Shown piece after piece: positions 6,545 through 37,700 of a stretch of 64,000 nucleotides of DNA. The stretch covers positions 159,801 to 223,800 of the forward strand of contig NIVC01001489.1 of NCBI GenBank assembly GCA_002269645.1. The letters are read 5' to 3'. The notes beneath the pieces were generated by a model. The model had not been told where the DNA came from, ran no database searches, and saw nothing but the letters and a program-made list of their open reading frames with translations. Within the stretch, counting starts at the first letter, position 1, and every line of letters begins with the position of its first letter. A program made the translations under genes and the position numbers. Source of the DNA: Macrostomum lignano (lineage: Eukaryota).

Positions 6545-6762
6545 AGACAGACCGACACAAACAGACACAGACAGACACAGACAGACACACAGAGACACAG
6601 ACAGACACAGACAGACACACAGAGACACAGACAGACACAGACAGACACACAGAGACACAAACAGACACAGACAGACACAGACAGACACACAGAGACACAG
6701 ACAGACACAGACGCAGGCAGACACAGGCAGACACAGACAGACACAGACAGACACACAGACAG
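6545..6762. repeat. Compound (AGAC/ACAG/AC)n microsatellite
   Basis: Visible directly; it explains the spurious VCLC/TQTD ORFs. Confidence 0.95.
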
Positions 6763-9260: not shown

Positions 9261-9618
9261 CATTGAATACTCTTCTAGGAAAAGCCGACGTACGTTCGTA
9301 CAAGATAAAACCAGCCAAGTTATTTTTTGAACCCAAAACCAACCTGTAGATGTGCGTGAATTCGACCTGCACGCCGTTAAGCACCGTGCGCGCCTGCAAG
9401 TCCTGTCCTGACTGCGGTGCCAACGGGGTGCTCACTACAGGCAGCGTCTGCTTCTGCAATCCGGGCTTCGCTCCGCCAAACTGCTTCACTGTAGGCTGCG
9501 GCGGCTCCGTTACGTCACGACTGACATGCAGCTTCAGTATACCGATGCAGCTTCAAACGCAATACCTTTGAAGATCAAACGGGTGCATTTTAATTTCCTA
9601 GTTTGATTTATAGGACCT

Positions 9619-10212
9619 GTGGGCACTACAGCGACACCGACTTGTGAATGGACAACTGCCACCACTGGCACAACAACCACCACTGGCACAACTGCCAAGA
9701 CAGATGCGACTGCCACCACTGGCACAACTGCCACCACTGGCACAACCGCCAAGACAGATGCGACTGCCACCACTGGCACAACTGCCACCACTGGCACAAC
9801 CGCCAAGACAGATGCGACTGCCACCACTGGCACAACTACCACCACTGGCACAACCGCCAAGACAGATGCGACTGCCACCACTGGCACAACTGCCAAGACA
9901 GATGCGACTGCCACCACTGGAACAACCGCCACCACTGGCACAACCGCCAAGACAGATGCGACTGCCACCACTGGCACAACCGCCAAGACAGATGCGACTG
10001 CCACCACTGGCACAACTGCCACCACTGGCACAACCGCCAAGACAGATGCGACTGCCACCACTGGAACAACTACCACCACTGGCACAACTACCACCACTGG
10101 CACAACTGCCACCACTGGAACAACTACCACCACTGGCACAACTACCACCACTGGCACAACTGCCACCACTGACACAACTGCCACCACTGGCACAACTGCC
10201 ACCACTGACACA
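9619..10212 (+). repeat. Coding minisatellite (18-bp ACAACTGCCACCACTGGC units mixed with AAGACAGATGCG-containing units) encoding a Thr-rich stalk
   Basis: ORF 9619..10344 consists of TTATTG/TTAKTDA repeats. Confidence 0.9.
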
Positions 10213-11625
10213 ACATTTGTTTTGCAAAGATTCACACTCAATCCCGATGGTGGAGTGAACTGTGGCAATCAGTTAAGCGCAGCCATCAGCTCAATTATTT
10301 TCATGACATTGTCGACACTGACAACCATGATGAAGCTTCACTGAGCGAGTAGTTCTGGAATTGAAATCAATATTTCACTGAACACAATGCAAATCTGACA
10401 GTTAGAATCGAATATTTAAGCAGATTTAAATGCCATTTATATTTTTGTACCGGATTATTTAAAAAACAATTTTTGCAACTGGCCGGAAATTTTGCTGGAG
10501 GCTTTCGTTGCAAAATGCATTGGTGAGACAAAAAAATTTCAGTTTTTAGGACTAAATTTCCAATGTGTCACCCTCTGGACTTCCCCTAGCAGAAGCGTCT
10601 TTGTGCTTCAGTTGTCTATGCTGCTCTACTGCATACCGAATTGCAGACAGATTAAATATGCAGAGCCTCTAACGAGTTTTCCAAAAACAAATCGATGAAG
10701 TAAAACTGGGTATGCGACAGTGTGGTTCGTAGAAGGCATGTATCATATAGCTCGTATCGTATTTCCTTATTTCGCACGCATACCGTACTACTTGTAATCC
10801 TTCATTCATTTCAACAATATTCTATACGTATTAATATTGCGCTTATGTTACTTTTGTATCTGTAGTTATTGGTCGCCTCGCATGTATTTATTCTATTATT
10901 TTTATTTCATGCATATCGTGTTACTTCTCGTAAAGTAGTTCCTATTTATGTACATGTATTTAGTTTACAGTATTCTAGCACGAGTTTGTACAGTTCGCTT
11001 GGGGGGTTTGCCTGATTAGGCCTGTTTATCAATTGTTATCATGTTTACATGTACATTATACTCGTAAATATACGCTTGCAGTCAGCGGCCGCTTTCTCAC
11101 TTCTTCTCTGCTCGCGGGTCCTTAGCCGTCTGGCTTTTCCTCGCCCTCACAAGTTTACCCTTCCGCCGCCTACTTCGGCCCACCAATCAGCAGGGTCTCG
11201 ACCGGCCTTCGCAAGGCGCAACCAGAGCTCATTGGATTAAAGCCCATTAAAGTACCCACTTACAATTACGCTAGTGTGAATTCGGCTGCTGAGCTGGATC
11301 GTAGACTTAATCAAATTAGTTAATAAATTAACCGCTACACCAGAAAAGTCTTCCGCCGTAATCGTCACAGCTAAGAGGGACGCGTCTCGATAAATCAATC
11401 TGAAACTTTTAGGAAGCGATGACAAAAATATTAATGATGTTGAGACCTGACAAAGAATAACGAAATTGTAACAAACAGCATGTAATTTATTTGATCGCGG
11501 ATCGCGGACATTCGAGGAATAATTTATTGGTCCTCAAGATAAAGCCAATAATCCCAATTGTAATTGACTTAAGGGAACGCGAAATAGTTAGATCTTGGTG
11601 CTTATAGCAGTGTTTTTTTAGCAAT

Positions 11626-12734: not shown

Positions 12735-15170
12735 ATGTCAAAGAATCAAGTGGCAGCCTGTTTCCACGTTAAGGCGGACTCTGGGATGCTAGGCGAAGCG
12801 CCTCATCAGCCAGCGGCGTCAGTTGAGGAGATTCTCTCCAGCTTCATCAAGTACGCCAGCCACAGCGGCATGCTGCCCGGCATGCAGAGGCAGGGTGCCA
12901 AGCGCACCGTGTTGACCGCTCTGGCAGTGCTGGCCAATGTCTTGATCTATGCCGAGTGTCTGGCTACCATGGTGATGTTCTTGCGCCTGCCAACGGCCCT
13001 GGATGCAAGCACAACTTTGCTGGTTGTGTCCATCATCTTTCACTCCTACTGTGCCTCGATCAGCTCTCTGTTCATGTGGTCCAGCTGCTCGGGAAGGCTG
13101 AGCAGCTTTCTGCTCGATGTGGACGCAATACTGGCTGATTCGAGAGCCGTGCCCCAGCTGGAGGCGGCACTGCGACAGCGGTTCTTTCAGTACAAGGGTC
13201 TGCTCAGGAAGTTCTTTGCAGCGTTTTTCACTGCCGTAGTGATCAACTCGATCATGAGCGTGACCCTCATCATCATGGCTCCGAACCAGGTTCCTTTCAT
13301 GTTCAACATCCGCATTGCGATGTTCGGCTCTGCAGGGACCGGCCCCCTGCCAGCAATCCACCAGGCTCCCTGGGCGCAGGTGGCCAGCCAGGTTGCCGCT
13401 TCGGTCTGGTGGATCTACAAGTCACTCCTGTGGAACTTCGGCTTTCTGCTCTTCTTCACCTTAATTTGCATCCCTACCCACCTGCTGCTGGGCTACAGTT
13501 CGGGGCTTGCGGCCCAAGTTCGAGAATCCCAGGGACTCACGGGAGACGCAGCCGCGGCCTATCGACTTTTCTATTTGAGGATCGCGGGCGCAGTTGAGTC
13601 CGCTGACGTCATAGTGCGCCTGTACCTGTGCGCCACCTTCCTGTTCTGCATCATGACCGTGATGTTCAACGTCAACGCCTTGATAGACTTGAGCCAGGTG
13701 GATCAGATGGTGACCTCCATCCTGGCCGTTTGGATCGGGTCCGGCCTTGTGCTGCTTTGCCTGCCAGTCTTCATGTGCGGCAGAGTTTCGGTTCTGGTGA
13801 GGACGCAAAACTTTTAGCTGCAAATATTGTAGCTTACCGAGCTTCTTTTTGGCCAGGATTTATTTAGATCAAGGTCGTTTTAGCTGGTTTTAACAGTAGG
13901 AATTCTACTCCTGACAAATTTTTGCTACGCCAGAACGGAGCAAGACATTCACATGAAATTAGAGGACGCAAGCTAACGTTTTGTTGCGCACACCTTCTCA
14001 GGATTCTCAGGACTCTGGACTTTTAACAGGTGGCATTGGTGACTGTGGAAACCTGTTGCGACTGCGTACGATTCTTCATATCAAGCCTGGTCAGTAGGCA
14101 AGCCTCAAGTACTGGAAATTCTCAACTAGTCTCTCAGTCATCATCCTAACCCACTTTCTGCAGATGGCACCTGGTTGACTGTGGACTGACAATTAATAGC
14201 TAATCCTGTCCTTGAATTTCGTACAGCACTGGAAACGTATTTTGATTGGTTGCATAAGAGAAGTCAAGTGACACAGAGCAGGACAATCACGCTTTACTAG
14301 GGCTATGAGACTCAAGATGGCGATGCAAAATTTCTAATATGAGGATTGTCCAACGCGTCTTGCGCTATCGCCAGGTTTCATACACCGTGCATGCAGTCAG
14401 CAAGAGTTTTACTGTCCAGTGCACTTAAACAGATTCGTTTTTAATTTTCAGGTCAAGAAGCCTTTAGACGTTCTGCAGCGGCAGGAGATCACGAAAAATA
14501 ACTTTAAAGAGGTAAAAAGTAATCAGCATTAACTACGAGTATACTCAGCAACATTGAAAAGTCGCCACTCTATGCGCCAGTGAGCAATTTCCCTTAGATT
14601 TCTCTTAGACTATTCTGCAATAAAAGATACGAGAAAATTGATCGGAGTAGCTTTAATCCGTCCAACCTTCGCCCACCGCTCACTCCACCACTTCATTTCT
14701 CAACTCAAGTCTGCCGCGGCGTAGCTGAGTTGCGTCACTCGCAAAGATTAAGAGGCTTTACCTACACTTTCAAAAGTGGCGACTGAACAGACAGAATCTT
14801 ATGCGATGGCAACTTTTCGATGTGGCTGGGTATATTAAGCTTTTTCGAGCATTCTTGTGCATCTCAACATTGAATTGAAATCTCAGCTTCTAGTGCTTCT
14901 AGAGGTGGTGAACAGCAGCAGCTGCGGCATCACCTGCGCCGGCCTCTTCACCATTGACTATTCGCTGATTCCAAGTGTGAGTAGCATCAGCCTCATGCCG
15001 CTTCTCTCACTCCGAAATTGAGTTAAACTTGATCTAAGAGCGCATTATTGAAATTTCAGCTCACCGGACTGCTGCTGACTTACTTCATTCTAATTGTGCA
15101 GACCCAGCAAGGCGCCAACAGCTCCGGCTACCCCAGCGGGGGAGGCACTTCAAACGGCTCAGCGCTCTGA
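12735..15170 (+). CDS. Gustatory receptor-like (Grl, 7TM ion-channel superfamily) protein, ~440 aa, 4 exons
   Basis: Exons 12735-13796, 14452-14511, 14887-14976 and 15060-15170, with three phase-0 GT-AG introns at the 3' end. There are multiple hydrophobic helices. The C-terminus has GITCAGLFTIDYSL followed by LLTYFILIVQT, matching the GR-family TY-x5-QF TM7 signature (F replaced by T). Confidence 0.88.
13910..14150 (+). mobile_element. Solo arm of the foldback family in Grl intron 1
   Basis: Similar to 3280-3640 (ttttgctacgccagaacggagcaa..., ttaacaggtggcattggtgactgtgg, aggcaagcctcaa). Confidence 0.6.
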
Positions 15171-15388: not shown

Positions 15389-15726
15389 CCGAAACTACAT
15401 CGTCGGCAGTCACATAGTTTCTGTTATGGGTTTTTTTCTGAAATAGCACAGACACGCAACATCCAGGTAAAAAACACTAGTCTTTAATATTGATACCTGG
15501 CTCTTGAAATAACGGCTACGATTTGCTCTAAAATACATTTTACTTTCGTCAAAAGATCTGCGTGAAAGTTGACTTGAAATTCTGCAAAGCTATCACTTCT
15601 GGACAATGATCTGTTTATAACGCGTTCAAAGCTGCCACAAGTGAAATCACAGTGCAGTGTCGAATATACTGTAGAAACTGCTTCAGCCGCGAATGTATCA
15701 AGCCTGTATATTTGTGTTGAACAGCA

Positions 15727-15875
15727 ACTCCTGTGGAACTTCGAGTTTCTGTTCTTCTTCACCTTAATTTGCATCCCTACCCACCTGTTGCTGGGCGACT
15801 GGGTTCGCGGCCCAAGTTCGAGAATCTCAGGGTCTCACGGGGGACGCAGCCGCGACTTATCGATTTTTCTATTTA
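15727..15875 (+). pseudogene. Degenerate partial duplicate of Grl exon 1
   Basis: LLWNFEFLFFFTLICIPTHLLLG matches 13425-13575 (LLWNFGFLLFFTLICIPTHLLLG), followed by a frameshift. Confidence 0.88.
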
Positions 15876-16059
15876 CAGATCGCATCCTGCGCCTCCCGAA
15901 GGAAAGCCAGCGTGGACCACTGAAGCCCGCATCGCCAGATCTCGACTAAAAACGGATGTACGAGACTTACTACAAGTAACTAACTATAGGCTGTGGCTCC
16001 GACACCCACACGGTGGCTGTGACACCCTGCATACAGAGACCACAGTGTGAATGAATGTG

Positions 16060-17259: not shown

Positions 17260-20200
17260 ATGGCAGGTAAGTTCCGCTCTCACTGCCTGAGTTTCCACCG
17301 GGTACGCACGAAGCTGTACGGCATTCAATCCGCAAATTTCAGGTGCACTGCTGCTCACTCTCTCCATCCTGGCTGCTGGAGCTGCAGCAGACACTGAGTA
17401 CACGCACGTGTGGGACTCCGCTGACATGGCGCTGGGCTGCAAGCCATGGCTGTCTGTGCAGGTGAAGACAGGAGACCTCACCGAGTTGCACAACATTACC
17501 TTCACTTTGTCCACCAGGTGAGAATTTGGTTTGACTTTGTCATAGCCTTCGTAACATGGGCTGCTTTTTCACGCCAACCCTGAAGTATGACGGATATACG
17601 GTAGAGGACTAGAGGATCACCGGTAGAGGACTTGAGGATCACCGGTAGAGGACTAGAGGATCAACGAACTCTCTACATCCCCCAACCGTACCAACATCAA
17701 CAGGATCCTATAAACAGTATTTTAAGGATGCTTAAAGTCCATTCCACGCTGCCCCTGTGACAGTAGCTAAAAGTTCACAAACTACTTGAAAACTTGTCCG
17801 CAGCGCCGTCTTCAACAAGCGAGTCCGAGTCCGCACAAGCGATCGGCACTTCAAGCACAAGCACAGAGCGCCCTGTCTGTACCAAGGAAGAGTTGGCAAC
17901 ACGGACGAAAAGGCTTATGCCAGCGAGCTCGGAGACCGACTAAAGTGAGTCAATTTCTAGCTCTGAGATGCAGCTATTCTCCAGCTTAATAACCTTGACC
18001 CTTGACCTCCGCCGTAGAATGACCTTCAAGCTGAACGGCAGCTGGTACCAAGCCGAGACGTCCTCCGGCAGTTCCGCGGACGCTCCGGCAATCGCGAAGC
18101 AGTTCGAAGTCCGCGAAGACGAGACCGCCAGCCAGTGCCGCTACAAAGTTCCGCCCAGAAACTTCAGCGAGATGAACGCGCAAGGCGCCAGCGCCATTCC
18201 GTCGAGTGTCGCCTTCGTTCTGGAAAAGGGCGCGCTGAACGTCGAAAGCTTTCAGGGTGCCATCGTGGACAAGATCTTGGAGCTGGTCATCGTTGTGGAT
18301 CGAAGCTTTGTAAGAATTCGCAGGTGCTTCCATGCTGCTTGAAAGCTGAGCTCCTTACTCACCGCCATTCCCTGCGGTCACTTCCAGATCAGCAAAGCCG
18401 GCAGCGAGTCGGGCGCTGTGACCAGAGTCATGCAAATCTTCAATTTCGTGAATGGGGTGAGCAGAATTCTGTGAATTTTCCGCTAATGAGATATCGATTT
18501 GCAGTTCTTCCTTGCCCGTTGCAGCTGTACCAACCACTCAGACTGAGAGTTGTGCTCACTGAGATTGTCATCTGGCGAACGGACAAAATTTCGATCAGCT
18601 CAAGCGGCGGGGAAACCTTTCAACAGTTTACGTTCTACAAGGCCTTTCAAATGAAAGGAATTAAGCATGACTCGGTTATGCTACTCAGGTGACGAGACCT
18701 CATCGTTTCTGCTGATTGGTTTTACAGTGCTTCGATGAATTCATTTCAACATCGGATAGCTAATTTTGTGCCCACGTGTCACTTCATTTACTGTTTACCC
18801 CCAAAATTTTCCAGCGCTACAAACTGGGACGGAAACAAAACTCTTGGCGTAGCCTGGATCAGGTCCACCTGCTTCACTGCGCACTCGTGCGGAATAGTTA
18901 GTGTGAGCACTTCGAATGCTTTTCTATTCTCCGGATAGCTGCAACAGACAGGTGAAGATTTTTTGCTTGCCGCATCGCCAACACCTGCAGGACAGATACT
19001 CAGAGGAGATTTCCACCGCGCTGGTTCTGACGCATGAGGTCGGTCACAACCTGGGATTCCTGCACACGAAAGACTACAGAAGCTGTGTCTGCAATCGGTC
19101 TTCAACCGGCTGCATCATGAACTCGTTCCTGGACCCCAAAACTCGGTGAGAGCTGAGCTGGCTACAACCACACCGCACTCGATCCCACACACCAGTGAGA
19201 GCTGAGCTGGCTACAACCGCACCGCACTCGATCCCACACACTAGTGAGAGCTGAGCTGGCTACAACCGCACCGCACTCGATCCCACACACTAGTGAGAGC
19301 TGAGCTGGCTACAACCGCACCGCACTCGATCCCACACACTAGTGAGAGCTGAGCTGGCTACAACCACACCGCACTCGATCTCACACTAGTGAGAGCTGCT
19401 CTGGCTACAACCGCACCGCACTCGATCCCACACACTAGTGAGAGCTGCTCTGGCTACAACCGCACCGCATTCGATCTCACACTAGTGAGAGCTGCTCTGG
19501 CTACAAAAGCACCGCACTCGATCTCACACTAGTGAGAGCTGCTCTGGCTACAACCACACCGCACTCGATCCCACACACTAGTGAGAGCTGAGCTGGCTAA
19601 ACCACAATTCACTCGATCCCACACACTAGTGAGAGCAGAGCTGGCTACAACCACAATGCACTCGAACCCACACACTAGTGAGAGCTGAGCTGGCTACAAC
19701 CGCACCGCACTCGATCCCACACACTAGTGAGAGCTGAGCTGGCTACAACCACAATGCACTCGAACCCACACACTAGTGAGAGCTGAGCTGGCTACAACCG
19801 CACCGCACTCGATCCCACACACTAGTGAGAGCTGAGCTGGCTACAACCGCACCGCACTCGATCCCACACACTAGTGAGAGCTGAGCTGGCTGAACCACAA
19901 TGCACTCGATCCCACACACTAGTGAGAGCTGCTCTGGCTACAACCACACCGCACTCGATCCCACACACTAGTGAGAGCTGAGCTGGCTAAACCACAATGC
20001 ACTCGATCCCACACACTAGTGAGAGCTCAGCTGGCTGAACCACAATGCACTCGATCCCACACACTAGTGAGAGCTGCTCTGGCTACAAAAGCACCGCACT
20101 CGATCTCACACTAGTGAGAGCTGCTCTGGCTACAACCGCACCGCACTCGAACCCACACCAAGCGGTTCAAATTCGCCCTCCTCCCTCCCGCAGCACGGAA

Positions 20201-21419
20201 GCCCTGGGCTGGTCTTCCTGCTCCTTGAAGGCCTGGGGCTTGCAGGCCAACGAGACCTGGAGGAGCTGCCTGGCGGACGCACCGGATGAGTCCTACACCA
20301 CCAACCGGAGCATCTCAGCATGCGGCAACGGCATCTTGGAGCACGGCGAACAGTGCGACTGCGGGCCATCTCAGGCGAGACGTCCGTGGCATTTCACAGA
20401 GACATTGATGCGTGCAAGGTGTGCAAGAGACTCCGGATAGCAAATTACATCAGAGCGAGAGCAAGCATATCATTAGCATACATGTGAATGCAATAATAAA
20501 GTTCTTACTTGCTTATCAAAGCAACTAGAGCATAAAAATACTATTGCCGTGCAATTGCTATCTTTACACCAGTAATTTATCAACCCCAATGCTTCATCTT
20601 GAACCTGCTGATAGCAACAAATACAGCAACCGAAAGCATCTTATTTGAGCACAGTTCTTACAATGGGTCTCAATGAGCCTCTCAAACTCTGCCATACAGC
20701 TTGCATTCTCAGGCTTCCATTGTCCGATGCCTGGCCTGCTTTACGAGTACTCAATAATTAGCGATTGAGCAGCTCTCTGAGCAGCTCTGGGTCAGTCCTG
20801 CCATTATCACCTGAACCGTGCGCTCTTCTGACAACTGATGCAGAAGATAGTCCTAACGAGAAGACACTCTGTCTGACACTGCTCCGACTACGAGCGTATT
20901 TTCTTTTGTTTTATATTAACAGCAGATCGAGTGGGTAGAGATTGAGAGAGTGAGTCATAGACCGAGAAGGCTACTCCCCACTTCGAGAGACAATAGTAGT
21001 ACTATGCAGATATGACATGCCATGCTATGCAGACGTGCTCGTCAAAGTGCTGCGACGCGAAGACGTGCCGGCTCAAGGCCGGTGCCACCTGCGCCTCGGG
21101 AGCCTGCTGCGACTGGGACACCTGCACGCTGAGGCCGAGGGGCCGCGTCTGCAGAGCCGCCGACGGACCGTGCGACGTGCCGGAGACCTGCAGCGGGTCT
21201 GGCGAGTGGTGCCCCAGCGACGACAAAGTGGCCGACGGAGTGGACTGCGCTGCCGGTCAGGTGAGAGACGCTGCTGAAGACAGGTGTCTGGTGTTATGGT
21301 TTTTTACCTTGTAGCTTAAGCGCCTTTGATTTTGTGCCTGTCTGAGCTATGAGCTACATATTTAAAGTTCATACTCGCTTCTCGAATAGTAAGTTCATCT
21401 GTAGTTATGTCTGTCTGTC

Positions 21420-21469
<50 letters not shown>

Positions 21470-21477
21470 CGCCTGCC

Positions 21478-21522
<45 letters not shown>

Positions 21523-21561
21523 GTCTGTAGTAGTGTCGGTCTGTCTGTCTGTCTGTCTGCC

Positions 21562-21614
<53 letters not shown>

Positions 21615-21621
21615 GCCTGCC

Positions 21622-21680
<59 letters not shown>

Positions 21681-24600
21681 GTGTCAAGATATTTTTTACA
21701 GAATTAGTGAGAACATCTGCTCAGCATTTGCATCCTCATCACTTCAGGCCTTCTGCTACAAGGGACGCTGCAGATCGCCAGACACCCAGTGCCGAAGGCT
21801 TTTTGATTCTTCAGCCAAGAGCGCCGACAAGAAGTGCTTTGAAATCCTGAACAAAAACAGCAGCGCCTACGGCCACTGCCATTCACGACTGGCTGTGCTC
21901 TTCATCTCGGCCAGGTTCAGACTGTCGGGAATTTTCTCCTACGTGCCGTGCGCTCCAAAGTGAGTGAATGGAGCTGTTTGACTAATGGCTATTGCAAGTA
22001 GGAAAGGCACAGGTATTTAAATATTCACAAATTTTACAGGGACGTTGAGTGCGGCCTGCAGCAGTGCGAGCTGGTTGCTAAGCCTCGGTTTGGGAACAAT
22101 AAGACGGTCGGAAATACCACCTGCTACTCGTTCCCCCACATCGATTTGTCTTCATCCGGAATGCGCAGCCCCTCTCTGGTGCCGGACGGAGCCAAGTGCG
22201 GAGTTGACTCGGTGAGATGGGCAGGCCAGCTATGGCTGGAGTTGGGTAGCAGTTGAGGTGAAGACCTGCCGATTTTGAAAATTGCAGATGTGCGTCAACT
22301 CCACCTGCACACCGCTGAGCACCGTCCGAGCCTGCAAGTCGTGCCCTGACTGCAAAGCCAACGGGGTGCTCACTTCTGGCAAAGTCTGCTTTTGCAAAGC
22401 CGGGTTCGAGCCGCCAAACTGCTCCAAGGTGGGCTGCGGCGGCTCCGTGACGTCACCGCTGACGTGTCCCGGTGAGTACCGGGGATCCTCTGGCCTTCTA
22501 CCGGTGATCCTCTAGTCCTCTACCGGGGATCCTCTACTCTTGTACCGGGGATCCTCTAGTCTTGTACCGGGGATCCTCTAGTCCTCTACCGGTGATTCTC
22601 TAGTCCTCTACCGGTGATCCTCTGGTCTTCTACTGGTGATCTCTAGTCTTCTACTGGTGATCTCTAGTCTTCTACTGGTGATCCTCTAGTCTTCTAGTGG
22701 TGATCCTCCAGTCTTTTACCGGGGATCCTCTACTCTTGTACCGGGGATCCTCTAGTCTTGTACCGGGGATCCTCTAGTCTTGTACTGGGGATCCTCTAGT
22801 CTTGTACCGGTGTTCCTAAAGGCACTAACCCCAGCAGCTTTTGTACTGTAAGAGGTCTTGTTAGACAGCACGGAGGCTACTGCATGCAGTATTAAATATT
22901 GTTGAACTGAATCTTTATTGTTATAACTTTCAGTGAAAAATAGTACGACAACAACGTATGAACCCACGAGCAAGTCGACGAGCGAGCCGACGTCTCCAGA
23001 GTCTGTCAGCTCTACAAGCGCACCGGAAGCTGCTGAAACTACAGCTACAAGTGATTCAACACACTACACAAGTGAGAAGACATCTCCAGAGTCTGTTAGC
23101 TCTACAAGCGCACCGGAAGCTGCTGAAACTACGAGTACAGTTACAAGTGACTCAAACCGCTACACAAGCGAGCCGACATCTCCAGAGTCTGTCAGCTCTA
23201 CAAGCGATCCTCTACCGCTACACACAACCCGCTACACAAGGGAGCCGACGTCTCTAGAGTCTGTTGGCTCTACAAGCGCACCGGTAGCTCCTGAAACTAC
23301 GAGTACAGTTACAAGTGACTCAACCCGCTACACAAGGGAGCCGACGTCTCTAGAGTCTGTCGGCTCTTCAAGCGCACCGAAAGCTCATGAAACCACAACT
23401 ACAAGTGAGCCAACCCGCTACACAAGCGAGCCGACATCTCCAGAGTCTGTTAGCTCTACAAGCGCAGCGAAAGCTCCTAAAACTACAACTATAAGTGAGT
23501 CAACCCGCTACACAAGCGAGCCGACATCTCCAGAGTCTGTTAGCTCTACAAGCGCAGCGAAAGCTCCTAAAACTACAACTATAAGTGAGTCAACCCGCTA
23601 CACAAGCGAGCCGAGGTCTTCAGAGTCTGTCAGCTCTACAAGCGCAGCGAAAGCTCCTGAAACTACAACTACAAGTGAGCCAACCCGCTACACAAGCGAG
23701 CCGACATCTCCAGAGTCTGTCAGCTTTACAAGCGCACCGAAAGCTCATGAAACCACAACTACAAGTGAGCCAACCCGCTACACAAGCGAGCCGACATCTC
23801 CAGAGTCTGTTAGCTCTACAAGCGCAGCGAAAGCTCCTGAAACTACAACTACAAGTGAGCCAACCCGCTACACAAGCGAGCCGACATCTCCAGAGTCTGT
23901 CAGCTCTACAAGCGCAGCGAAAGCTCCTAAAACTACAACTACAAGTGAGTCAACCCGCTACACAAGCGAGCCGACGTCTCCAGAGTCTGTCAGCTCTACA
24001 CGCGCGCCGGAAGCTGCTGAAACTACAACTACAAGTGAGTCAACTCACTACACAAGGGAGCCGACGTCTCTAGAGTCTGTTAGCTCTACACGCGCACCGG
24101 AAGCTGCTGAAACTACGAGTACAGTTACAAGTGACTCAAACCGCTACACAAGCAAGCCGTGGTCTTCAGAGTCTGTCAGCTCTACACGCGCAGCGAAAGC
24201 TCCTGAAACTACAACTACAAGTGAGCCAACCCGCTACACAAGCGAGCCGACATCTCCAGAGTCTGTCAGCTCTACAAGCGCAGCGAAAGCTCCTGAAACT
24301 ACAACTACAAGTGAGGCAACCCGCTACACAAGCGAGCCGACATCTCCAGAGTCTGTCAGCTCTACAAGCGCAGCGAAAGCTCCTGAAACTACAACTACAA
24401 GTGAGCCAACCCGCTACACAAGCGAGCCGACATCTCCAGAGTCTGTCAGCTCTACAAGCGCAGCGAAAGCTCCTGAAACTACAACTACAAGTAAGCCAAC
24501 CCGCTACACAAGCGAGCCGACATCTCCAGAGTCTGTCAGCTCTACAAGCGCAGCGAAAGCTCCTGAAACTACAACTACAAGTGAGCCAACCCGCTACACA

Positions 24601-25764
24601 AGCGAGCCGACATCTCCAGAGTCTGTCAGCTCTACACGCGCAGCGAAAGCTCCTGAAACTACAACTACAAGTGAGCCAACCCGCTACACAAGGGAGCCGA
24701 CGTCTTCAGAGTCTGTCAGCTCTTCAAGCGCACCGAAAGCTCATGAAACCACAGCTACAAGTGAGCCAACCCGCTACACAAGCGAGCCGACATCTCCAGA
24801 GTCTGTAAGCTCTACAGGCGCACCGGAAGCTCCTGAAACTACAGCTACAAGTGACTTAACCCTCTACACAAGTGATAACCACTACAAAAGCGAGCCGAGG
24901 TCTTCAGAGTCTGTCAGCTCTACAAGCGCAGCGAAAGCTTATGAAACTACAACTACAAGTGAGCCAACCCGCTACACAAGCGAGCCGACATCTCCAGAGT
25001 CTGTCAGCTCTACAAGCACAGCGAAAGCTCCTAAAACTACAACTACAAGTGAGTCAACCCGCTACACAAGCGAGCCGACGTCTCCAGAGTCTGTCAGCTC
25101 TACACGCGCGCCGGAAGCTGCTGAAACTACAACTACAAGTGAGTCAACTCACTACACAAGGGAGCCGACGTCTCTAGAGTCTGTTAGCTCTACACGCGCA
25201 CCGGAAGCTGCTGAAACTACGAGTACAGTTACAAGTGACTCAAACCGCTACACAAGCAAGCCGAGGTCTTCAGAGTCTGTCAGCTCTACACGCGCAGCGA
25301 AAGCTCCTGAAACTACAACTACAAGTGAGTCAACCCGCTACACAAGCGAGCCGACATCTCCAGAGTCTGTCAGCTTTACAAGCGCAGCGAAAGCTCCTGA
25401 AACTACAACTACAAGTGAGTCAACCCGCTACACATGCGAGCCGACGTCTTCAGAGTCTGTCGGCTCTACAAGCGCACCGAAAGCTCATGAAACTACGAGT
25501 ACAGTTACAAATGACTCAACCCGCTACACAAGGGAGCCGAGGTCTTCAGAGTCTGTCAGCTCTACACAGGCACCGGAAGCTCCTGAAACTACGAGTACAG
25601 CTACAAGTGATTCAACCCACTACACAAGCGAGCCGCCATCTCCAGAGTCTGAGAGCAGTGTGAATCCTGATGAAGAAGTCGCTTTGAAGAGCTCCGAGTG
25701 CTTGCTGGCTTTTGAGTTTGCATGCTTTCTTGGAGTCGTCGTGTCGCTTGGATCCATCATCTAA
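17260..25764 (+). CDS. ADAM/reprolysin (M12B)-type metalloprotease-disintegrin with mucin stalk and GPI-signal-like C-terminus, ~1596 aa, 13 exons
   Basis: Exons 17260-17266, 17343-17517, 17985-18309, 18388-18456, 18525-18688, 18815-18902, 18991-19145, 20194-20374 (GC donor), 21033-21260, 21748-21959, 22040-22211, 22288-22471 and 22934-25764 total 4791 nt, with all phases compatible. Features: signal peptide [18 protein letters not shown]; ILELVIVVD; [11 protein letters not shown]; Met-turn CIM; disintegrin [15 protein letters not shown]...CCDAKTC; Cys-rich DVECG...VPDGAKCG; EGF-like; 30-aa S/T/P/E repeats; terminal [21 protein letters not shown]. Confidence 0.9.
17600..17663 (-). repeat. 22-bp minisatellite (x3), reverse complement of the 22.5-kb array unit
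   Basis: ggtagaggactagaggatcacc repeats. Confidence 0.8.
19146..20155 (+). repeat. 47-49-bp intronic minisatellite (~21 copies) starting at the donor of ADAM intron 7
   Basis: Unit gtgagagctgagctggctacaaccgcaccgcactcgatcccacacacta. Confidence 0.95.
21409..21682. repeat. (TCTG)n microsatellite in ADAM intron 9
   Basis: Visible directly. Confidence 0.97.
22476..22815 (+). repeat. 22-bp intronic minisatellite (gtaccggggatcctctagtctt)
   Basis: About 15 units immediately after the exon-12 donor. Confidence 0.92.
22970..25650 (+). repeat. Coding 90-bp tandem repeat (30 aa, [30 protein letters not shown]) forming the mucin stalk
   Basis: The 943-codon ORF 22933..25764 stays open throughout the array. 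Confidence 0.95.
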
Positions 25765-26049: not shown

Positions 26050-26520
26050 GACAAGAAACATTTTCTTTTCCAAGTATTTGTGGATACCGATGGCGAATTA
26101 AACAAAAATGTCCCGTGAAGCTCGCAATTGATCTTGCGTGCCAGAACGTGTACAGCGACAACAATACCAATGAACCGCTGTTCGATGCTCGAAAGTTTAA
26201 AAAAACTATTCTAATTGAGCACTAAGGGTATCTTCATGTTTCAAAATAAGTTATATCGTCAAACTGATGGATTTGCAATGGGCAGCTCGCTGGCTCCAAC
26301 GCTAGCTAACTTATGCCTGGCGCACTGGGAGTCTGAGTGGTCAAAGAATAAATCGGCACCACGGATGTACTATCTATATGTCGATGACACGTTCGCCATT
26401 TTTTATTCTCAAACTCATGGTGAGCTTTTGGACATGCTCAACCATTTTAAAATTTTCGATCGCACTGAGCACCATAATAAACTTTCTATATTGGAAGCTT
26501 TGCACATTTAAGACTGCCAA
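26050..26520 (+). mobile_element. Penelope-like element reverse transcriptase remnant (frameshifted)
   Basis: FQNKLYRQTDGFAMGSSLAPTLANLCLAHWE...YYLYVDDTFAIF matches the PLE RT motifs Y.Q..G.AMGS.L.P.LAN and YVDD. Confidence 0.85.
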
Positions 26521-28656: not shown

Positions 28657-29860
28657 ATTGTTTAGCAATTTGACGATCATTATTCGCATATTTTATGCAG
28701 AACAATCATTACTACAAACATTGTATCACGCTGGCGCGCGTTAGATGCACGATTTACTGTGCGTCTAATGTAGGTGTCTATGGCAATTTTCTATCTGAGT
28801 AAAGGCAACAAGCGTGCGTCTAACGCGTGCGTGTAATGCACGGAAAGTGAGTAGCACCTCTGGAGATTTCCGATCGAAGTAGTCAGACAGCCTCTTCAGA
28901 TCAACAGGCTCGATCGATTGGAAGTGTCGGGCGCGTCCGCCTCGGGCAATGAAGATTCTGCCCATTGACTTCAGTGTCGTATTGGAAGCATAGAATGCGT
29001 CGTCAGTTAGAATATTGATTCGCCTTGTCGACATGAAATGCCGGTAGAGCGCAGCTCGGATACAAATCAACGTGGCTGGAGCAAAGTATTCGCCATTCCT
29101 CTTGCGAAGTGAGCCATAGAAGTATCGCAATAGACTGTCGATCTCGCGCGGTGTAGAAGTCGCCAAATCACGCTGAACTGACGGATGGTTCTCCATGAAG
29201 CTCTGCAACTTACCGACATAATATTCGGTAGCCTTTGTCACACTTGTACTAGCAGCGGTGTCCTGGATTTCGGAAACGAGCTGTTCCAATTCAAGTAGTT
29301 CAGCTTCTTCGTCAGGTATCTTCTTGAAAAGTGCCTCCAGAAGATCCTCCTCTTCTCGATCAATTGCCGACTCCGGTAGATTATCAGGCTCGTTCAGAAT
29401 GTCGTCAATCTCATTGGTGGACAAGCCGGAAATCATTTCGTTTGGAAATTTGCTCAGATTCAGAAGTCTGACTTCAGTTGGTGGCTCAGCCATATTCTCT
29501 CACAAGTGATTTTAATTTAACAGCTTCTTATTCCCTTCTTCGCAACACTCAATCAACTTGCGTGCCTTTCACGCATTTTTGTCTATGGTTAAGACAAATT
29601 AACTGAGCGTGCATCTAACGCGCCATCTAAAGTATTAAGCCAACGTAATACAATGCAACTCATACATCGATTTTTTGTGCTTAAATGGTCTATGGCACTC
29701 GTGCGCTGCGCATCCTACAATGCATTGTCTGTAGGATCGTCAAACAGAAAAACAATGCAAAGAATCAGCGGTCGCAGCACGTGACAACGATTTGTCTATG
29801 CCTACCGGCGCTCGCCAGACAATCGTTGTCACGCACTGGGACCGATTATTAATTATCCAT
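28657..29860 (-). mobile_element. Crypton-like (tyrosine-recombinase) element, truncated; ORF 28765..29493 encodes the N-terminal half
   Basis: TSVTKATEYYVGKLQSF...EIDSLLRYFYGSLRKRNGEYFAPATLICIRAALYRHF...FYASNTTLK resembles the CryptonA/DUF3504-associated N-terminal region (KCTD1/ZMYM-like). The C-terminal catalytic residues were not found. A subterminal hairpin lies at ~29780-29833. Confidence 0.75.
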
Positions 29861-30660: not shown

Positions 30661-31259
30661 GTTAAATACCCGACTAAAGTACCATAGGTAATTAAACATT
30701 TTACTAAGGAACTGAAAGTGACTACGAATATAAGATATATAATTAAACAATTCAACCAGCAAACTTATCGATAAATTGCTTTCAGAAACTGTCATTTCTA
30801 GGGCCTAACAAAAACATAACGAGCAAACCTATCTAAAGTACACAGTACAAATAACAAACGACTTTTTGCGAGAAAACAAGCAAAATATTAATGATAAAAT
30901 AATTGATACGTAAAATTAAACAACAGAATACTTCTGATGTAGCAAAGCAGATCAACATTTATAGTTGGCTAATAGTAAAGGGAAGGCGATTTACAATACA
31001 AAAAAGCAGAAACGCCCATTAAATATGCAACACAGCTAGGATAACTGATCAGCGAGTGCACTGGGATATTCGGTGAGGAAACAAACAACTACAGAAAAAG
31101 CATTGAAAAAGCAGCAATTAGCAGTTATCAAGACATCCGAAGTCTACTAAGACTAATGATGGCGACAGACGGCATAATTATCCTAAGTGAGATTTTGTTA
31201 GCACCGGAATTTTAACTGAAATTATCTGAGTTCTCACTCAGATTATAATGAGCACTTCT

Positions 31260-31580
31260 GAGATCTCACCCGTGAGATAGTAGCACTGAGATCTCACCTA
31301 TGAGACAGTAGCAGTAATATCTCACCTATGAGACAGTAGCAGTGATATCTCACCTATGAGACAGTAGCACTGAGATCTCACCTATGAGACAGTAGCAGTG
31401 ATATCTCACCTATGAGACAGTAGCACTGAGATCTCACCTATGAGACAGTAGCAGTGATATCTCACCTATGAGACAGTAGCACTGAGATCTCACCTATGAG
31501 ACAGTAGCAGTGATATCTCACCTATGAGACAGTAGCACTGAGATCTCACCTATGAGACAGTAGATCTAAGATCTCACCTA
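31260..31580 (+). repeat. 28-bp tandem repeat with two alternating variants (gagatctcacctatgagacagtagcact / gatatc...agcagt)
   Basis: About 11 units. Confidence 0.92.
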
Positions 31581-31781
31581 TTAGACGTATCACCAACGTC
31601 TAATAGAGAAGCCACCTTACCTGAGACAGTCAAGCCTTGTCTCGCACATTACTTCAGTAAGGGCCATCGATTTTAACTAGTGTGGACAGGACCTCAACAA
31701 AGAAATGCATCAAAATGTAATAAAAAGATTTGATGATGCAGAGGTGACGCAATCAGTCTGTGGGTGCTACACCAGCCCAGC

Positions 31782-34700
31782 TCAGTGCTGCATTGGCTCA
31801 CCTCGAGCTCCGCCTCGTCTCTCGGCGTCCCGTTCGGCTTTCCAAGCGGCAATTCGATTGCGAAGCTCGGGCAGCTCTTTCAGATCGGACTCGGACATGG
31901 GCATCTTTGAGTAGGGATTGGTGGCCGAGTTCAACAGGTGGCGCCTGATGGTGGCTCGGTCCAAAATCTGAAAGTTTAGGAAGGGGGAGACAGCAGGGGG
32001 TCAGGCTGCGGCAGACAGTTGAAGAGGATCTGGCAAAGCAACTGAGAAGGCTGGCCTAGCAACTGAGGATCTGGGAGGCTGGCCTAGAAACTGAGGATCT
32101 GGGAGAGTGGCCTAGCAACTGAGAAGGCTGGCCTAGCAACTGAGGATCTGGGAGGCTGGCCCAGCAACTGACACTCTTGGAGGCTGGCCCAGCAACTGAC
32201 ACTCTGGGAGGCTGGCCCAGCAACTGAGGATCTGGGAGGCTGGCCTAGCAACTGACACACTTGGAGGCTGGCCTAGCAACTGAGGATCTGGGAGGCTGGC
32301 CCAGCAACTGAGGATCTGGAAGGCTGGCCCAGTAACTGAGGATCTGGGAGGGTGGCCTTAGCAACAGAGGACCTGGGAGGGTGGCCTAGCAACTGACACT
32401 CTGGGAGGCTGGCCCAGAAACTGAGGATCTGGGAGGCTGGACCAGAAACTGAGGATCTGGGAGGCTGGCCCAGCAACTGACACTCTGGGAGGCTGGCCCA
32501 GAAACTGAGGATCTGGGAGGCTGGACCAGAAACTGAGGATCTGGGAGGCTGGCCCAGCAACTGACACTCTGGGAGGCTGGCCTAGAAACTGAGGATCTGG
32601 GAGAGTGGCCTAGCAACTGAGAAGGCTGGCCTAGCAACTGAGGATCTGGGAGGGTGGCCTAGCAACTGAGAATCTGGGACGCTGGCCCAGCAACTGAGGA
32701 TCTGGGAGGCTGGCCCAGCAACTGAGGATCTGGGAGGCTGGCCCAGCAACTGAGGATCTGGGAGGCTGGCCCAGCAACTGAGGATCTGGGAGGCTGGCCC
32801 AGTAACTGAGGATCTGGGAGGCTGGCCTATCAACTGAGAATCTGGGACGCTGGCCCAGCAACTGAGGATCTGGGAGGCTGGCCCAGCAACTGAGGATCTG
32901 GGAGGGTGGCCTTAGCAACAGAGGATCTGGGAGGGTGGCCTAGCAACTGACACTCTGGGAGGCTGGCCCAGAAACTGAGGATCTGGGAGGCTGGCCTATC
33001 AACTGAGAATCTGGGACGCTGGCCCAGCAACTGAGGATCTGGGAGGCTGGCCCAGCAGCTGAGGATCTGGGAGGCTGGCCCAGCAGCTGAGGATCTGGGA
33101 GGCTGGCCCAGCAACTGAGGATCTGGGAGGGTGGCCTATCAACTGAGAATCTGGGAGGCTGGCCCAGCAACTGAGGATCTGGGAGGCTGGCCCAGCAACT
33201 GAGGATCTGGGAGGCTGGCCCAGTAACTGAGGATCTGGGAGGGTGGCCTTAGCAACAGAGGACCTGGGAGGGTGGCCTAGCAACTGACACTCTGGGAGGC
33301 TGGCCCAGAAACTGAGGATCTGGGAGGCTGGCCCAGAAACTGAGGATCTGGGAGGCTGGCCCAGCAACTGAGGATCTGGGAGGGTGGCCTATCAACTGAG
33401 AATCTGGGACGCTGGCCCAGCAACTGAGGATCTGGGAGGCTGGTCCAGCAACTGAGGATCTGGGAGGCTGGACCAGAAACTGAGGATCTGGGAGGCTGGC
33501 CCAGCAACTGACACTCTGGGAGGCTGGCCCAGAAACTGAGGATCTGGGAGGCTGGACCAGAAACTGAGGATCTGGGAGGCTGGCCCAGCAACTGACACTC
33601 TGGGAGGCTGGCCTAGAAACTGAGGATCTGGGAGAGTGGCCTAGCAACTGAGAAGGCTGGCCTAGCAACTGAGGATCTGGGAGGGTGGCCTAGCAACTGA
33701 GAATCTGGGACGCTGGCCCAGCAACTGAGGATCTGGGAGGCTGGCCCAGCAACTGAGGATCTGGGAGGCTGGCCCAGCAACTGAGGATCTGGGAGGCTGG
33801 CCCAGCAACTGAGGATCTGGGAGGCTGGCCCAGTAACTGAGGATCTGGGAGGCTGGCCTATCAACTGAGAATCTGGGACGCTGGCCCAGCAACTGAGGAT
33901 CTGGGAGGCTGGCCCAGCAACTGAGGATCTGGGAGGGTGGCCTTAGCAACAGAGGATCTGGGAGGGTGGCCTAGCAACTGACACTCTGGAGGCTGGCCCA
34001 GAAACTGAGGATCTGGGAGGCTGGCCTATCAACTGAGAATCTGGGACGCTGGCCCAGCAACTGAGGATCTGGGAGGCTGGCCCAGCAGCTGAGGATCTGG
34101 GAGGCTGGCCCAGCAGCTGAGGATCTGGGAGGCTGGCCCAGCAACTGAGGATCTGGGAGGGTGGCCTATCAACTGAGAATCTGGGAGGCTGGCCCAGCAA
34201 CTGAGGATCTGGGAGGCTGGCCCAGCAACTGAGGATCTGGGAGGCTGGCCCAGTAACTGAGGATCTGGGAGGGTGGCCTTAGCAACAGAGGACCTGGGAG
34301 GGTGGCCTAGCAACTGACACTCTGGGAGGCTGGCCCAGAAACTGAGGATCTGGGAGGCTGGCCCAGAAACTGAGGATCTGGGAGGCTGGCCCAGCAACTG
34401 AGGATCTGGGAGGGTGGCCTATCAACTGAGAATCTGGGACGCTGGCCCAGCAACTGAGGATCTGGGAGGCTGGTCCAGCAACTGAGGATCTGGGAGGCTG
34501 GCCCAGCAACTGAGGATCTGGGAGGCTGGCCTAGCAACTGAGGATCTGGGAGGGTGGCCTTAGCAACAGAGGACCTGAGAGGCTGGCACAGCTATTGACA
34601 GGCAGACATGCAGACAACACGCACCTGTCCAGTGGGCAGCTCCACAGGGTCGGACATGAGAGTGAACATCATCTCGTCCATGAACTCGTCCGGCGCATTG

Positions 34701-37700
34701 TCATAGTCCAAGTCAACCTGCCGCCTGGCATTGGCGATCTCGTCTGTCCGCTCCCGCAGCCGCTCCAGCACCTGCAGATCCATCTCGGAGCGAATGCCGG
34801 CCCGTCGGATCCGTTCGATAGCCTGGGGGAGCAGCGACTCCGAGTAGCTGCGCTCGTCATTCACAATGGCCTCCTGGAACTCGGGCTGGACGGCCAGATT
34901 CAAGTAGATGGTGATAAAATTGCTCAGCATGGACCTCGGCTCCCAGCCGTATTTGTCCGGACTTCGGACTTTTAAAGTGTTGCACTTGCTGCCGCAGAGC
35001 TGTTTGAGATTGTAGTTGAGCATAGTTGCTAACCGCTCCACTAGTTCGCCGTTCATGAAAGCCCTGGGCAGCTCTTGAGTCAGGTAGTTGAACATTTCCA
35101 CCGTTTTTAGCGACAGGGTCAGGTAGGATTTCACCTGCAGGTTGGTGTTAGGTCAGTTTGTGGAAAATTTTTGGCTGGGAGAAACCAATAATAACCCTCT
35201 ACGAAGTCGCTCCTTATTGCCTGGCATGGACAGAGAAGCTACCCATCTCACTCTATTCGCTTCTCATTGGCTGAGACGAATAGAGAAGTCACCCACCTCA
35301 CTCTAGCCGCTTCTCACTGGCTGAGACAAACAGGGAAGCCATCTACCTCACTCCAGCCGCTTCTCATTGGCTAAGACAAACAGAGAAGCCACCAACCTCA
35401 CTCCAGTCGCCTCTCATTGGCTGAGAGAAATAGAGAAGTCACGCAACTCACACCCAGTCATTTCTTATTGACTACAGCGAATAGAAAAGGCACCACTTCA
35501 CTTCAGCAACTTCTAATTGGCTGAGATGAATACAAAAATTACCCACCCCACTCCACATTTCATTGGCGCTGAACATTTCATTGGCTAACACCGTCCAAAC
35601 CAACTGTTCCTTACAAGTCTTGCACCCGTATAACATACGCACCTGTCTCTCATTGTTATTCAGCTCCTGTCTAAGTTCTCCCTGCTGCTCGGCGGTGCAG
35701 CCTTGAAAGCCGGAATCTGCAAGGTCCTGAATCTCTCGGATTCGTTTCAAACAGCCGAGACTCTCGTCCAACAGGTAGGTGGCATCGTTAATCAACACGT
35801 TGACAAATCGTACAAATACGGGATTCTGAGACTGTCGACGGAACTGCTCCCTGTGCAGGTGGGTCGCCCAGAGGCTGTGAAATATAGTGGCTAGGTGATA
35901 GCGAATGGTGAACTTGTCGTAGAACTCGCTGCTCGAGCCCGTGCTTTCAACTTCCACGTAGAATTGTAACAGGCTAGTGACTAATCCGTCCAGACTCCAC
36001 TGCTGCATCACCAGGTCATGGAACTGAGCCTCCATACGAGGCTGCACAGTGGGATCAAGGTAAAATAATATCTCAACTAGCTTGGACACCAGGTGGGGAT
36101 TGCGCACCAGCGGATACGGATGAGACAGAGCCGCAATCACCAGGCGGAAGCAGCGCGGCACGGGAGTCTGCTTGAAGTAGCCGGGCTGGAATTCGATTAC
36201 CAGCACGAGCAGTTCGCACATGTCCTCTAGAAAGAACTCAGGCAGGCTGCGCAGCTCTTTGCACTGCTGCGTCTCGCCGTACTGCAGCAGGGAGAGCAGC
36301 CAGTCGGCCAGCTGATCGTAGTAGAACATGGCGTCCCTCAGCAGCGACTCGTGGTAGATTGCCGCCTAGCAGAGATGGATCAGTGTAAGCAATGCCAACT
36401 TAGCGAAAATTGTTAGTTGTCTTCATAACCCGAGCTTAGTCTTCATAAGCACTATTCTTCTCTAAATACTAAAGCAGAGTCAATCCGATGAAAACAGTAC
36501 CTAGGCATAGAAGCTTCCTAGCGTCACTTGCGTTGCCCCATAGTCGTTGCAGGTAACACAGGTAAAATACGATAAAGATGTCTCGGTACAAGTCTACAAA
36601 AAGTCGTCAATAAGTCAATTTGAGGTGTTCTATTGTCTGCGACTCTAAAAAAAGACTCTTGGGCGACAACAGGCACTCTGGTAGAGTTGTATCTGAGGCG
36701 TGCTTGAGTCTCTGTAGAATCACTGAGTTGCATCTCTAAAGCGCATCTGCCTCACTTTATGAATAAGACAACCTACTGCGCATAATCTACTTGAGTTAGT
36801 AGAAAGTTAAGCGCTAACACAGCGATTTTTAGACGACTTTCTGCAACTCAGGCGTGATGCGCTCGTGAGTGGCTTGCAATGACTCCTTAGCCATTCTTGT
36901 CACGGTTTTAATGCTTTTAACGGGTGAGTTAATAAATGATTCAAAGACACCGGTACGGAACTTGAATTATTCACGGAACGCTCACCTGATCGCACAGTTT
37001 AGCTCGCTTCTGACTGTTGAGAAATGTCCGAATCCTGTCGGCATTTTGCGCCTGCTCTCCGCTGTCCAGGATGCGTTCCGCTTCACGCAGATTGCGCAGT
37101 CTGCGCTTATGCTTGCGCAGCGTCGCAATCAGGCCGATGTGATGCGCGTAGGCGGCCAGAAAGAAGCCCTGCGTGTTGAAGCTGGCCGCCTCGGTGCCCA
37201 GCTCGCCTCGCCAGGCCGCCACCTCGCCGGCGTTCGCCATCAGGCGGGCATCGTCATCCTGATAATTAGTTGTTCATTGGTGATGATGATGGACCTTTGC
37301 ACTAATCCACCTGCACTTGCACCTTTGATGCACCACCTGCCCCTTGATGTAACACCTGCTCCTTGCACCATCTGCCACCTGCCCCTTGATGCACCACCTG
37401 TCCCTTGATGCACCACCTGCCACCTGCACCACCTGCCCCTTGATGCACCACCTGTTCCTTGATGCACCACCTGCCCCTTGATGCACCACCTGCCACCTGC
37501 ACCACCTGCCCCTTGATGCACCACCTGTTCCTTGATGCACCACCTGCCCCTTGATGCACCACCTGCCACCTGCACCACCTGCCCCTTGATGCACCACCTG
37601 TCCCTTGATGCACCACCTGCCCCTTGATGCACCACCTACCCCTTGATGCACCACCTGCCCCTTGATGCACCACCTGTCCCTTGATGCACCACCTGCCCCT

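Follow-up and report, generated by a model that had tools for sequence, protein, structure and literature searches.

Gene model of a Macrostomum ADAM

We analyzed a 64,000-nucleotide stretch of the Macrostomum lignano genome (assembly GCA_002269645.1, contig NIVC01001489.1, positions 159,801 to 223,800 of the forward strand), referred to here as the window. At positions 17260-25764, plus strand, the window contains a gene predicted to encode a metalloprotease of the ADAM family. A 14-exon model was rebuilt by hand from the three-frame translation and splice signals, and its joined coding sequence of 4932 nt is free of stops and encodes 1643 residues. Each of the 13 introns is bounded by consensus dinucleotides, GT-AG in 12 cases and GC-AG in one (at 20375). 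A first-pass annotation of this DNA had described an ADAM head joined to a very long mucin-type exon, with a hydrophobic end and no cytosolic residues. We recovered this architecture, found the features that it listed in the positions given, and saw that paralogues share the junction and the tail-less end. The annotation had missed the loss of the furin site and the position of the gene inside a repeat-ridden tandem ADAM array.

The coding part of exon 1 (17260-17266) is 7 nt long, consisting of the start codon at 17260 and 4 nt (ATGGCAG) before the donor CAG/GTAAGT; this is the sole in-frame ATG able to start the signal-peptide exon. Exon 2 (17343-17517) encodes the predicted signal peptide, cut before DT, and the start of the prodomain, and it aligns with residues 33 to 70 of the M. 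lignano ADAM P0001. Exons 3 (17804-17944) and 4 (17985-18309) continue the prodomain, including the putative cysteine-switch Cys, and encode the start of the catalytic domain. Exons 5 (18388-18456), 6 (18525-18688), 7 (18815-18902), and 8 (18991-19145) encode the Reprolysin catalytic domain, with the zinc motif and Met-turn in exon 8. Exon 9 (20194-20374), which has the GC donor, and exon 10 (21033-21260) complete the catalytic domain and encode the disintegrin domain; the protein encoded by exon 10 is 100% identical to the Macrostomum prediction P0121. The ADAM cysteine-rich domain lies in exons 11 (21748-21959) and 12 (22040-22211), and an EGF-like module in exon 13 (22288-22471), whose last base is G (phase 1) with the donor CCG/GTGAGT. 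Intron 13 (22472-22933; 462 nt) contains a 22-bp tandem repeat and ends in the acceptor ...aactttcag. Exon 14 (22934-25764; 2831 nt, 943 codons) holds the mucin-type stalk, the hydrophobic end, and the stop codon TAA (25762-25764). All exons are on the plus strand.

Tandem repeats also sit in four introns of the gene: a 22-bp unit in 3 copies in intron 2 (17599-17663), a 49-bp unit in 21 copies in intron 8 (19146-20158), (TGTC)x70 in intron 10 (21408-21685), and a 22-bp unit in 15.6 copies in intron 13 (22477-22817). By eye, the intron 13 unit is the reverse complement of the intron 2 unit with about two mismatches.

The ADAM ectodomain

The Pfam assignments of the predicted protein are Reprolysin (PF01421, residues 205 to 405, 1.3e-35), Disintegrin (PF00200, residues 424 to 498, 4.6e-19), and ADAM_CR (PF08516, residues 503 to 608, 3.6e-18). 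Both the zinc motif HExxHxxGxxH (19033-19065) and the Met-turn C-I-M (19111-19119) are intact, as the first-pass annotation had reported, and line up with those of eight ADAMs in an alignment. The same alignment shows the window protein to retain Cys in 39 of 41 conserved columns. On inspection, a hydrophobic core and an AxA-type site can be recognized in the signal peptide. The prodomain gives no match to Pfam Pep_M12B_propep; the Cys in ASQCRYKV occupies the alignment column of the cysteine switch of other ADAMs. Similarly, there is no Pfam EGF match in the EGF-like module, a Cys-rich module that aligns with ADAM EGF modules and that lacks one conserved Cys (residue 667), likewise missing in P0001.

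The nearest solved structures are those of P-III snake-venom metalloproteinases (SVMPs) and ADAM22 (2e3x at 1.7e-62, 9clp, 2dw0, 2ero, and 3g5c), with RVV-X, ecarin, VAP1, and ADAM22 as the relatives in the PDB. Over the ADAM part, the ratio of nonsynonymous to synonymous substitution rates (dN/dS) against three paralogous copies is 0.19-0.34, and the ectodomain family is therefore under purifying selection.

Relatives and the tandem ADAM array

The best database match is P0001 (BOX15_Mlig004569g1, 887 residues), which covers 97% of the ADAM part at 53% identity, and the other matches in this search are arthropod and vertebrate ADAMs at 28-39% identity. A second search added P0122 and P0123 (UniProt, M. 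lignano) and P0121 (UniParc UPI0007A1E109, 334 residues), whose accession series is that of the M. lignano import. Over exons 10 to 13 of the window gene, P0121 shows 93-100% identity, and an exhaustive search with P0121 returned P0122 and P0001 as its only close relatives. A reading of the gene as a vertebrate (fish) ADAM was dropped, as the best matches are from Macrostomum.

At the DNA level, the identity of the window to the M. lignano loci L001 and L002 is only 72-94%, which makes it a paralogous or homeologous M. lignano locus or else the ortholog from a close relative. L002, the locus of PAA61587.1, is cut off by the end of its contig; an identity of only 79-91% rules it out as the same locus and leaves a paralogous or related-species locus.

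A second ADAM copy lies upstream in the window. It is fragmentary and partly inverted, with an EGF-like exon at 9350-9529 (plus strand) followed, in the same layout as the main gene, by a stalk open reading frame (ORF) at 9607-10344 (plus strand) ending LNPDGGVNCGNQLSAAISSIIFMTLSTLTTMMKLH*; further pieces lie at 6074-6549 (plus strand) and 6870-7091 (minus strand). This copy is closest to P0122, P0123, and the second ADAM of L001. Its stalk consists of a different, T/G/A-rich repeat of its own, is at least 245 residues long, and stops after a weakly hydrophobic end. This copy, L001 (P0001 followed by a second ADAM), and the chimeric prediction P0271 together show that these ADAMs are arranged in tandem arrays with mosaic similarity. 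The window gene, intact in its predicted structure, belongs to a Macrostomum-specific ADAM family that has undergone tandem duplication.

Predicted joining of the mucin exon to the ADAM exons

The proposed EGF-to-mucin junction is well supported by the predicted gene structure, and with it the assignment of the mucin exon to the ADAM gene. The splice phases match, as exon 13 ends in phase 1 (TGT CCC G/gtgagt) and exon 14 needs phase 1 (cag/TG AAA AAT). A TAA at 22924 closes the frame of exon 14 upstream, so that it opens only 7 nt ahead of the acceptor; its 943 codons include no Met, and it is therefore not translatable by itself. In the P0001 gene, the intron after the EGF-like exon falls at the same codon and phase (TGC TTT G/gtgaga ... 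cag/AC TCG AAC AGA ACC ACA), and the stalk exons start alike, with D-S-N-R-T-T in P0001 and V-K-N-S-T-T in the window gene, that is, with a common N-S/R-T-T motif. P0121, P0122, and P0123 also pass from the EGF-like module straight to an S/T-rich stalk. A protein search spanning the junction matched three M. lignano gene predictions only, none of them transcript derived.

The C-terminal 76 residues of P0121 can be aligned to the last repeat unit and C terminus of the window protein (36% identity, E value of 8e-6). We therefore infer that the window stalk arose by in-place amplification of a unit present roughly once in P0121. Initiation of the mucin exon by a trans-spliced leader was also considered and rejected, since an ATG fused at 22934 gives ATG TGA.

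A predicted mucin-type stalk of about 900 residues

The single 2831-nt last exon described in the first-pass annotation consists mostly of 30-residue repeats rich in S, T, P, and E. The array of the 90-bp unit extends over 22981-25651 (plus strand) by Tandem Repeats Finder and translation combined; Tandem Repeats Finder by itself reports a 90-bp period over 23225-25651, in 26.4 copies with 87% matches. The translated array comprises 29 units of 24 to 36 residues, of which 20 have 30 residues, 6 have 32, one has 24, and one has 36, and the array holds a higher-order duplication of about 368 residues. Exon 14 is 48% S plus T, 10% P, and 12% E, with net negative charge, which in composition is a classical PTS (Pro/Thr/Ser-rich) or mucin-type sequence. 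As in mucin domains, the S/T/P-rich tandem repeats lie within one large exon.

A long open frame over a tandem repeat is weak coding evidence alone because one stop-free unit copied 29 times stays open automatically. The length variants of the repeat units are all multiples of 3 nt, and this is the only unbroken frame. The predicted coding status of the stalk rests on homology and splice phase rather than on ORF length.

The C terminus lacks a cytoplasmic tail

The window protein stops directly after a 21-residue hydrophobic stretch (25699-25761), with zero cytosolic residues; the transmembrane (TM) helix and cytoplasmic tail of a canonical ADAM are not present. A single exon of the P0001 gene (L001 14689-15132) encodes the stalk, the TM helix, and most of its Pro-rich cytoplasmic tail, which argues that the missing tail of the window protein is due to a stop inside a homologous exon and not to a missed exon. 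Nothing similar to the P0001 tail was found anywhere in the 64-kb window. There is no good donor in the last 200 nt; the best candidate there has a score of 5.6, close to the lowest value among the gene's own donors (5.4-12.7). Splicing from the last exon into a further TM/cytoplasmic exon is thus unsupported.

The hydrophobic end is homologous to that of P0121 (...KSAERSLAVNFECVFLAALATLWAAVGCFRI), which is tail-less as well, and the upstream window copy also has such an end (...NCGNQLSAAISSIIFMTLSTLTTMMKLH). A (V/L)NPD motif precedes the anchor in P0001, the window gene, and the upstream copy, with VNPD in the first two. As the tail-less end is common to diverged paralogues, the loss of the tail appears to be old and a character of the subfamily, not a fresh lesion. 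A DNA comparison of the two window copies showed no detectable similarity between their 3' flanks or between their preceding introns and so gave no date for the stop.

An endoplasmic reticulum (ER) signal peptide together with a C-terminal hydrophobic stretch and no cytosolic residues is the arrangement of glycosylphosphatidylinositol (GPI)-anchored proteins. GPI signals consist of an omega site of small residues (omega and omega+2), a polar spacer of about 6 to 10 residues, and a hydrophobic tail. In a 19-residue Kyte-Doolittle window, the hydrophobic end of the window protein scores 2.0-2.2, the range of textbook GPI signals, versus 3.2 for the true TM helix of P0001. GPI anchoring of the window protein is plausible. 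A crude rule gives one omega candidate in this protein and two, SKS and SLA, in P0121.

Comparison with known proteins

Within the family, the window gene resembles P0001 in domain order, in the position and phase of the intron after the EGF-like exon, in an S/T-rich stalk (starting N-R-T-T in P0001), in the VNPD before the anchor, and in having no Asp after the third zinc His. P0001 differs in its 40-residue stalk, strongly hydrophobic TM helix, Pro-rich cytoplasmic tail of about 150 residues, and RRRR furin site, whereas the window gene has a stalk of about 900 residues, a weaker hydrophobic end, and neither tail nor furin site. P0121 shares the order of EGF-like module, S/T-rich stalk, and tail-less hydrophobic end, but its stalk of about 75 residues is nonrepetitive, amounting to about one copy of the unit, and its Cys-rich region has frame disturbances. 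In four family members (three paralogues and the window gene), the stalk has about 40, about 75, at least 245, and about 900 residues.

We extended the comparison to 269 ADAM relatives gathered by three database searches. None of the 269 has an S/T/P-rich stretch of at least 150 residues before a membrane anchor; long S/T/P-rich regions do occur in ADAMs of 1300 to 1850 residues, but all of these are cytoplasmic. Tail-less hydrophobic ends occur in two frog isoform predictions, P0087 (Anomaloglossus "MTP4 isoform X3") and P0105 (Hyla "crotastatin-like isoform X2"), and in two unnamed proteins, P0183 and P0254. These four have an ADAM ectodomain and a hydrophobic end followed by 1 to 3 residues, but they are automatic, isoform-level predictions with no mucin stalk and with C termini unrelated in sequence. 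The uniqueness implied by the first-pass annotation is therefore overstated: among the 269 relatives it holds for the extracellular stalk of about 900 residues but not for the tail-less end, which is a trait of the Macrostomum subfamily and is seen in a few predicted ADAMs of other animals.

Canonical ADAMs (ADAM8, -9, -12, -15, and -28) and P-III SVMPs (RVV-X, ecarin, VAP1, and catrocollastatin) share the architecture of Reprolysin, disintegrin, and cysteine-rich domains, and solved ADAM and SVMP structures match the window protein with E values of 1e-62 to 1e-41. However, canonical ADAMs have a short stalk, a TM helix, and a cytoplasmic tail, and SVMPs are secreted. Among the metzincins, MT4-MMP (MMP17), MT6-MMP (MMP25), and leishmanolysin GP63 are GPI anchored. 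They would be parallels only if GPI anchoring holds here, as zinc proteases on a stalk in which a GPI signal replaces the TM helix and tail; they belong to families M10 and M8, have short stalks, and lack disintegrin and cysteine-rich modules. Functional heads are also carried on mucin stalks in fractalkine (CX3CL1) and CXCL16, and mucin-like domains occur in enteropeptidase and ADAMTS7/12. In these, too, a functional domain is distanced from the membrane or matrix by an O-glycosylated PTS-rich rod that tandem repeats encode, but the stalks are far shorter than about 900 residues, and the ADAMTS proteins are secreted and not membrane tethered. Our full-text literature search turned up neither a natural ADAM with a GPI anchor or a mucin stalk nor anything relevant to ADAMs or mucins of Macrostomum; the sole phrase match was a loose sentence in a 2016 review (PMC5187769).

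Proposed explanation and alternatives

The reading that we favor, with moderate confidence, is that of an intact ADAM whose stalk has been amplified to a mucin rod, whose cytoplasmic tail has been lost, and whose hydrophobic end is most likely exchanged for a GPI anchor. An ancestral short S/T-rich juxtamembrane stalk (about 40 residues in P0001 and about 75 in P0121) would have been amplified in place, with tandem duplication of the 90-bp unit giving about 900 Pro/Thr/Ser-rich, acidic residues that would be densely O-glycosylated and stiff. By the textbook figure of about 0.25 nm per residue for mucin domains, about 900 residues could place the protease/disintegrin head as far as about 200 nm from the membrane. 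The subfamily would also have softened the ancestral TM helix and lost the cytoplasmic tail. After entry into the ER through the signal peptide, the moderately hydrophobic 21-residue stretch at the C terminus would most likely be swapped for a GPI anchor, or else be kept as a minimal anchor. The GPI-anchored product would be a lipid-anchored, easily released protease without cytoplasmic signaling or sorting motifs. Given the loss of the furin site, removal of the prodomain would be autocatalytic or carried out by another protease.

Several observations weigh against this reading. In the ectodomain, the proprotein-convertase/furin site RxxR is lost (RRRR in P0001, LEKG in the window protein), and the residue after the third zinc His is Thr rather than the adamalysin Asp, which is found in all seven aligned non-Macrostomum ADAMs; P0001 has Val and P0084 has Met at this position, and the Asp is a family signature and not a catalytic residue. 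In the stalk, the ratio of nonsynonymous to synonymous differences (pN/pS) among the 30-residue units is 1.24, meaning that the repeat is without constraint at the amino acid level. Such a value is usual for mucin domains yet fits relaxed selection as well; as a test of coding constraint it is uninformative or negative. Every stalk repeat also carries a donor-like CAA/GTGAGT/C and, 39 nt on, an acceptor-like CATCTCCAG/AG. At the C terminus, the crude rule gives a single omega-site candidate (S-E-C, 22 residues from the end, with K-S-S-E preceding the hydrophobic segment), and the spacer LLAFEF after it is hydrophobic and not polar. Downstream, where the sequence is AT rich, the canonical polyadenylation signal AATAAA is absent within 300 nt past the stop, and the nearest ATTAAA is at 26097. 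Two database searches covering the region returned no Macrostomum transcript-derived protein among their matches, and the prediction of P0121, the closest relative, has frame disturbances of its own. Finally, rearranged ADAM fragments, transposon remains, and minisatellites are abundant in the neighborhood.

Much of this evidence could be accommodated by a decaying or never-expressed duplicate, among many recent ADAM copies, that has lost its tail and furin site and whose stalk is an unconstrained minisatellite, open by chance. The pN/pS of the repeats, the replacement of RRRR by LEKG, the visibly broken and partly inverted ADAM copy next to it, the minisatellites in introns 2, 8, 10, and 13, the reverse-transcriptase fragment 450 bp after the stop, and the lack of a matching annotated or transcript-derived protein in the database searches all fit such a history. 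We nonetheless regard decay as unlikely: 1643 codons and 26 splice sites are intact, the catalytic motif and 39 of 41 conserved Cys are kept, dN/dS in the ADAM part is 0.19-0.34, and repeat lengths vary by multiples of 3 around the sole unbroken frame. Moreover, the tail-less end is shared with diverged paralogues and hence is old, and unconstrained repeat sequence is normal for mucin domains. Alternatively, the same architecture could end in a tail-less type I membrane anchor with no GPI exchange. The descent of the 21-residue segment from a real TM helix, with VNPD ahead of it in both P0001 and the window gene, points that way, as does the single, weak omega candidate. But the segment contains a Glu, has a hydropathy of 2.2 versus 3.2 for the paralogue TM helix, and has no flanking basic stop-transfer residues, and its lack of any cytosolic residue completes the classical signature of a GPI signal; we regard a retained anchor as unlikely.

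The splice-like pairs in the stalk raise a further alternative, namely that the mature product differs from the model because the mucin exon is trimmed by internal splicing, restricted to some isoforms, or not joined to the ADAM exons. The pairs occur once per 90 bp over 23071-25414, both sites are in phase 1, and their scores are within the range of the gene's own sites, on position weight matrices built on 13 sites; the smallest modeled intron of the gene is 40 nt. An in-frame 39-nt mini-intron per repeat, or skipping from repeat to repeat, could therefore occur and make the mature stalk shorter than modeled. We consider a different product very unlikely, however, as the motifs were copied with the repeat and so represent one event, such splicing would stay in frame and leave a mucin stalk with the same end, and the Met-less mucin exon is placed exactly where the paralogues have their stalk exon.

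Taking the intact, mucin-stalked protease as the preferred reading, a broader and only tentative extension is that of a flatworm-specific ADAM subfamily in which a GPI signal replaces the TM helix and tail and a fast-evolving mucin rod sets the height of the protease/disintegrin head above the cell surface. In such a subfamily, stalk length could possibly be tuned further by the in-frame splice sites within every repeat. The stalk lengths of 40 to 900 residues would then form a clean evolutionary series from juxtamembrane linker to mucin domain.

The ADAM family is well known; the window gene is an unusual form of it, known purely by prediction, whose architecture is real at the level of the gene model. 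ADAM sheddases are thought to act near the membrane on neighboring substrates, under regulation through the TM helix and cytoplasmic tail. An ADAM lacking both and held up to about 200 nm out on a mucin rod would, if the reading is true, have to work differently, with mucus, extracellular matrix, microbes, or the surface of another animal as possible targets rather than cis shedding. It would also be the first ADAM shown to be lipid anchored and presented beyond the glycocalyx. M. lignano is amenable to RNA interference and transgenesis. The wider impact is modest, as this is a predicted protein of a lineage-specific gene family in a nonmodel flatworm.

Other features of the window

At the 3' border of the ADAM gene, a reverse-transcriptase fragment (RVT_1, below the Pfam cutoff; 26215-26511, plus strand) and a 242-residue ORF with a weak QRICH1-domain match (28765-29493, minus strand) are probably transposon remains. 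The next recognizable gene downstream, on the strand opposite to the ADAM gene, comprises exons of a Ufd2/UBE4-type ubiquitin chain elongation factor (34592-40012, minus strand), with Ufd2P_core matches at 1.8e-60 and 3.6e-48 and the start of a U-box. A 28-bp minisatellite of 91.5 copies with 87% matches (32048-34592) explains the highest GC content, 0.61. The window has other minisatellites at 31258-31593, 37325-37935, and 50217-51235.

Upstream of the ADAM gene, an ATG-initiated ORF of 360 residues (12735-13817, plus strand) has no Pfam match and contains several long hydrophobic stretches, suggesting by eye a multipass membrane protein; its C-terminal part is partially duplicated 2 kb downstream (15578-15946, plus strand). 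At the other end of the window, a head-to-tail array of a 1457-bp unit (52722-64000, plus strand) has at least 7.7 copies that are 99.7-100% identical. Each unit contains an intronless, Cys-rich ORF of 443 residues (e.g., 54010-55341), which has no Pfam match and no PDB sequence match and carries several N-glycosylation sequons. The array continues past the end of the window.

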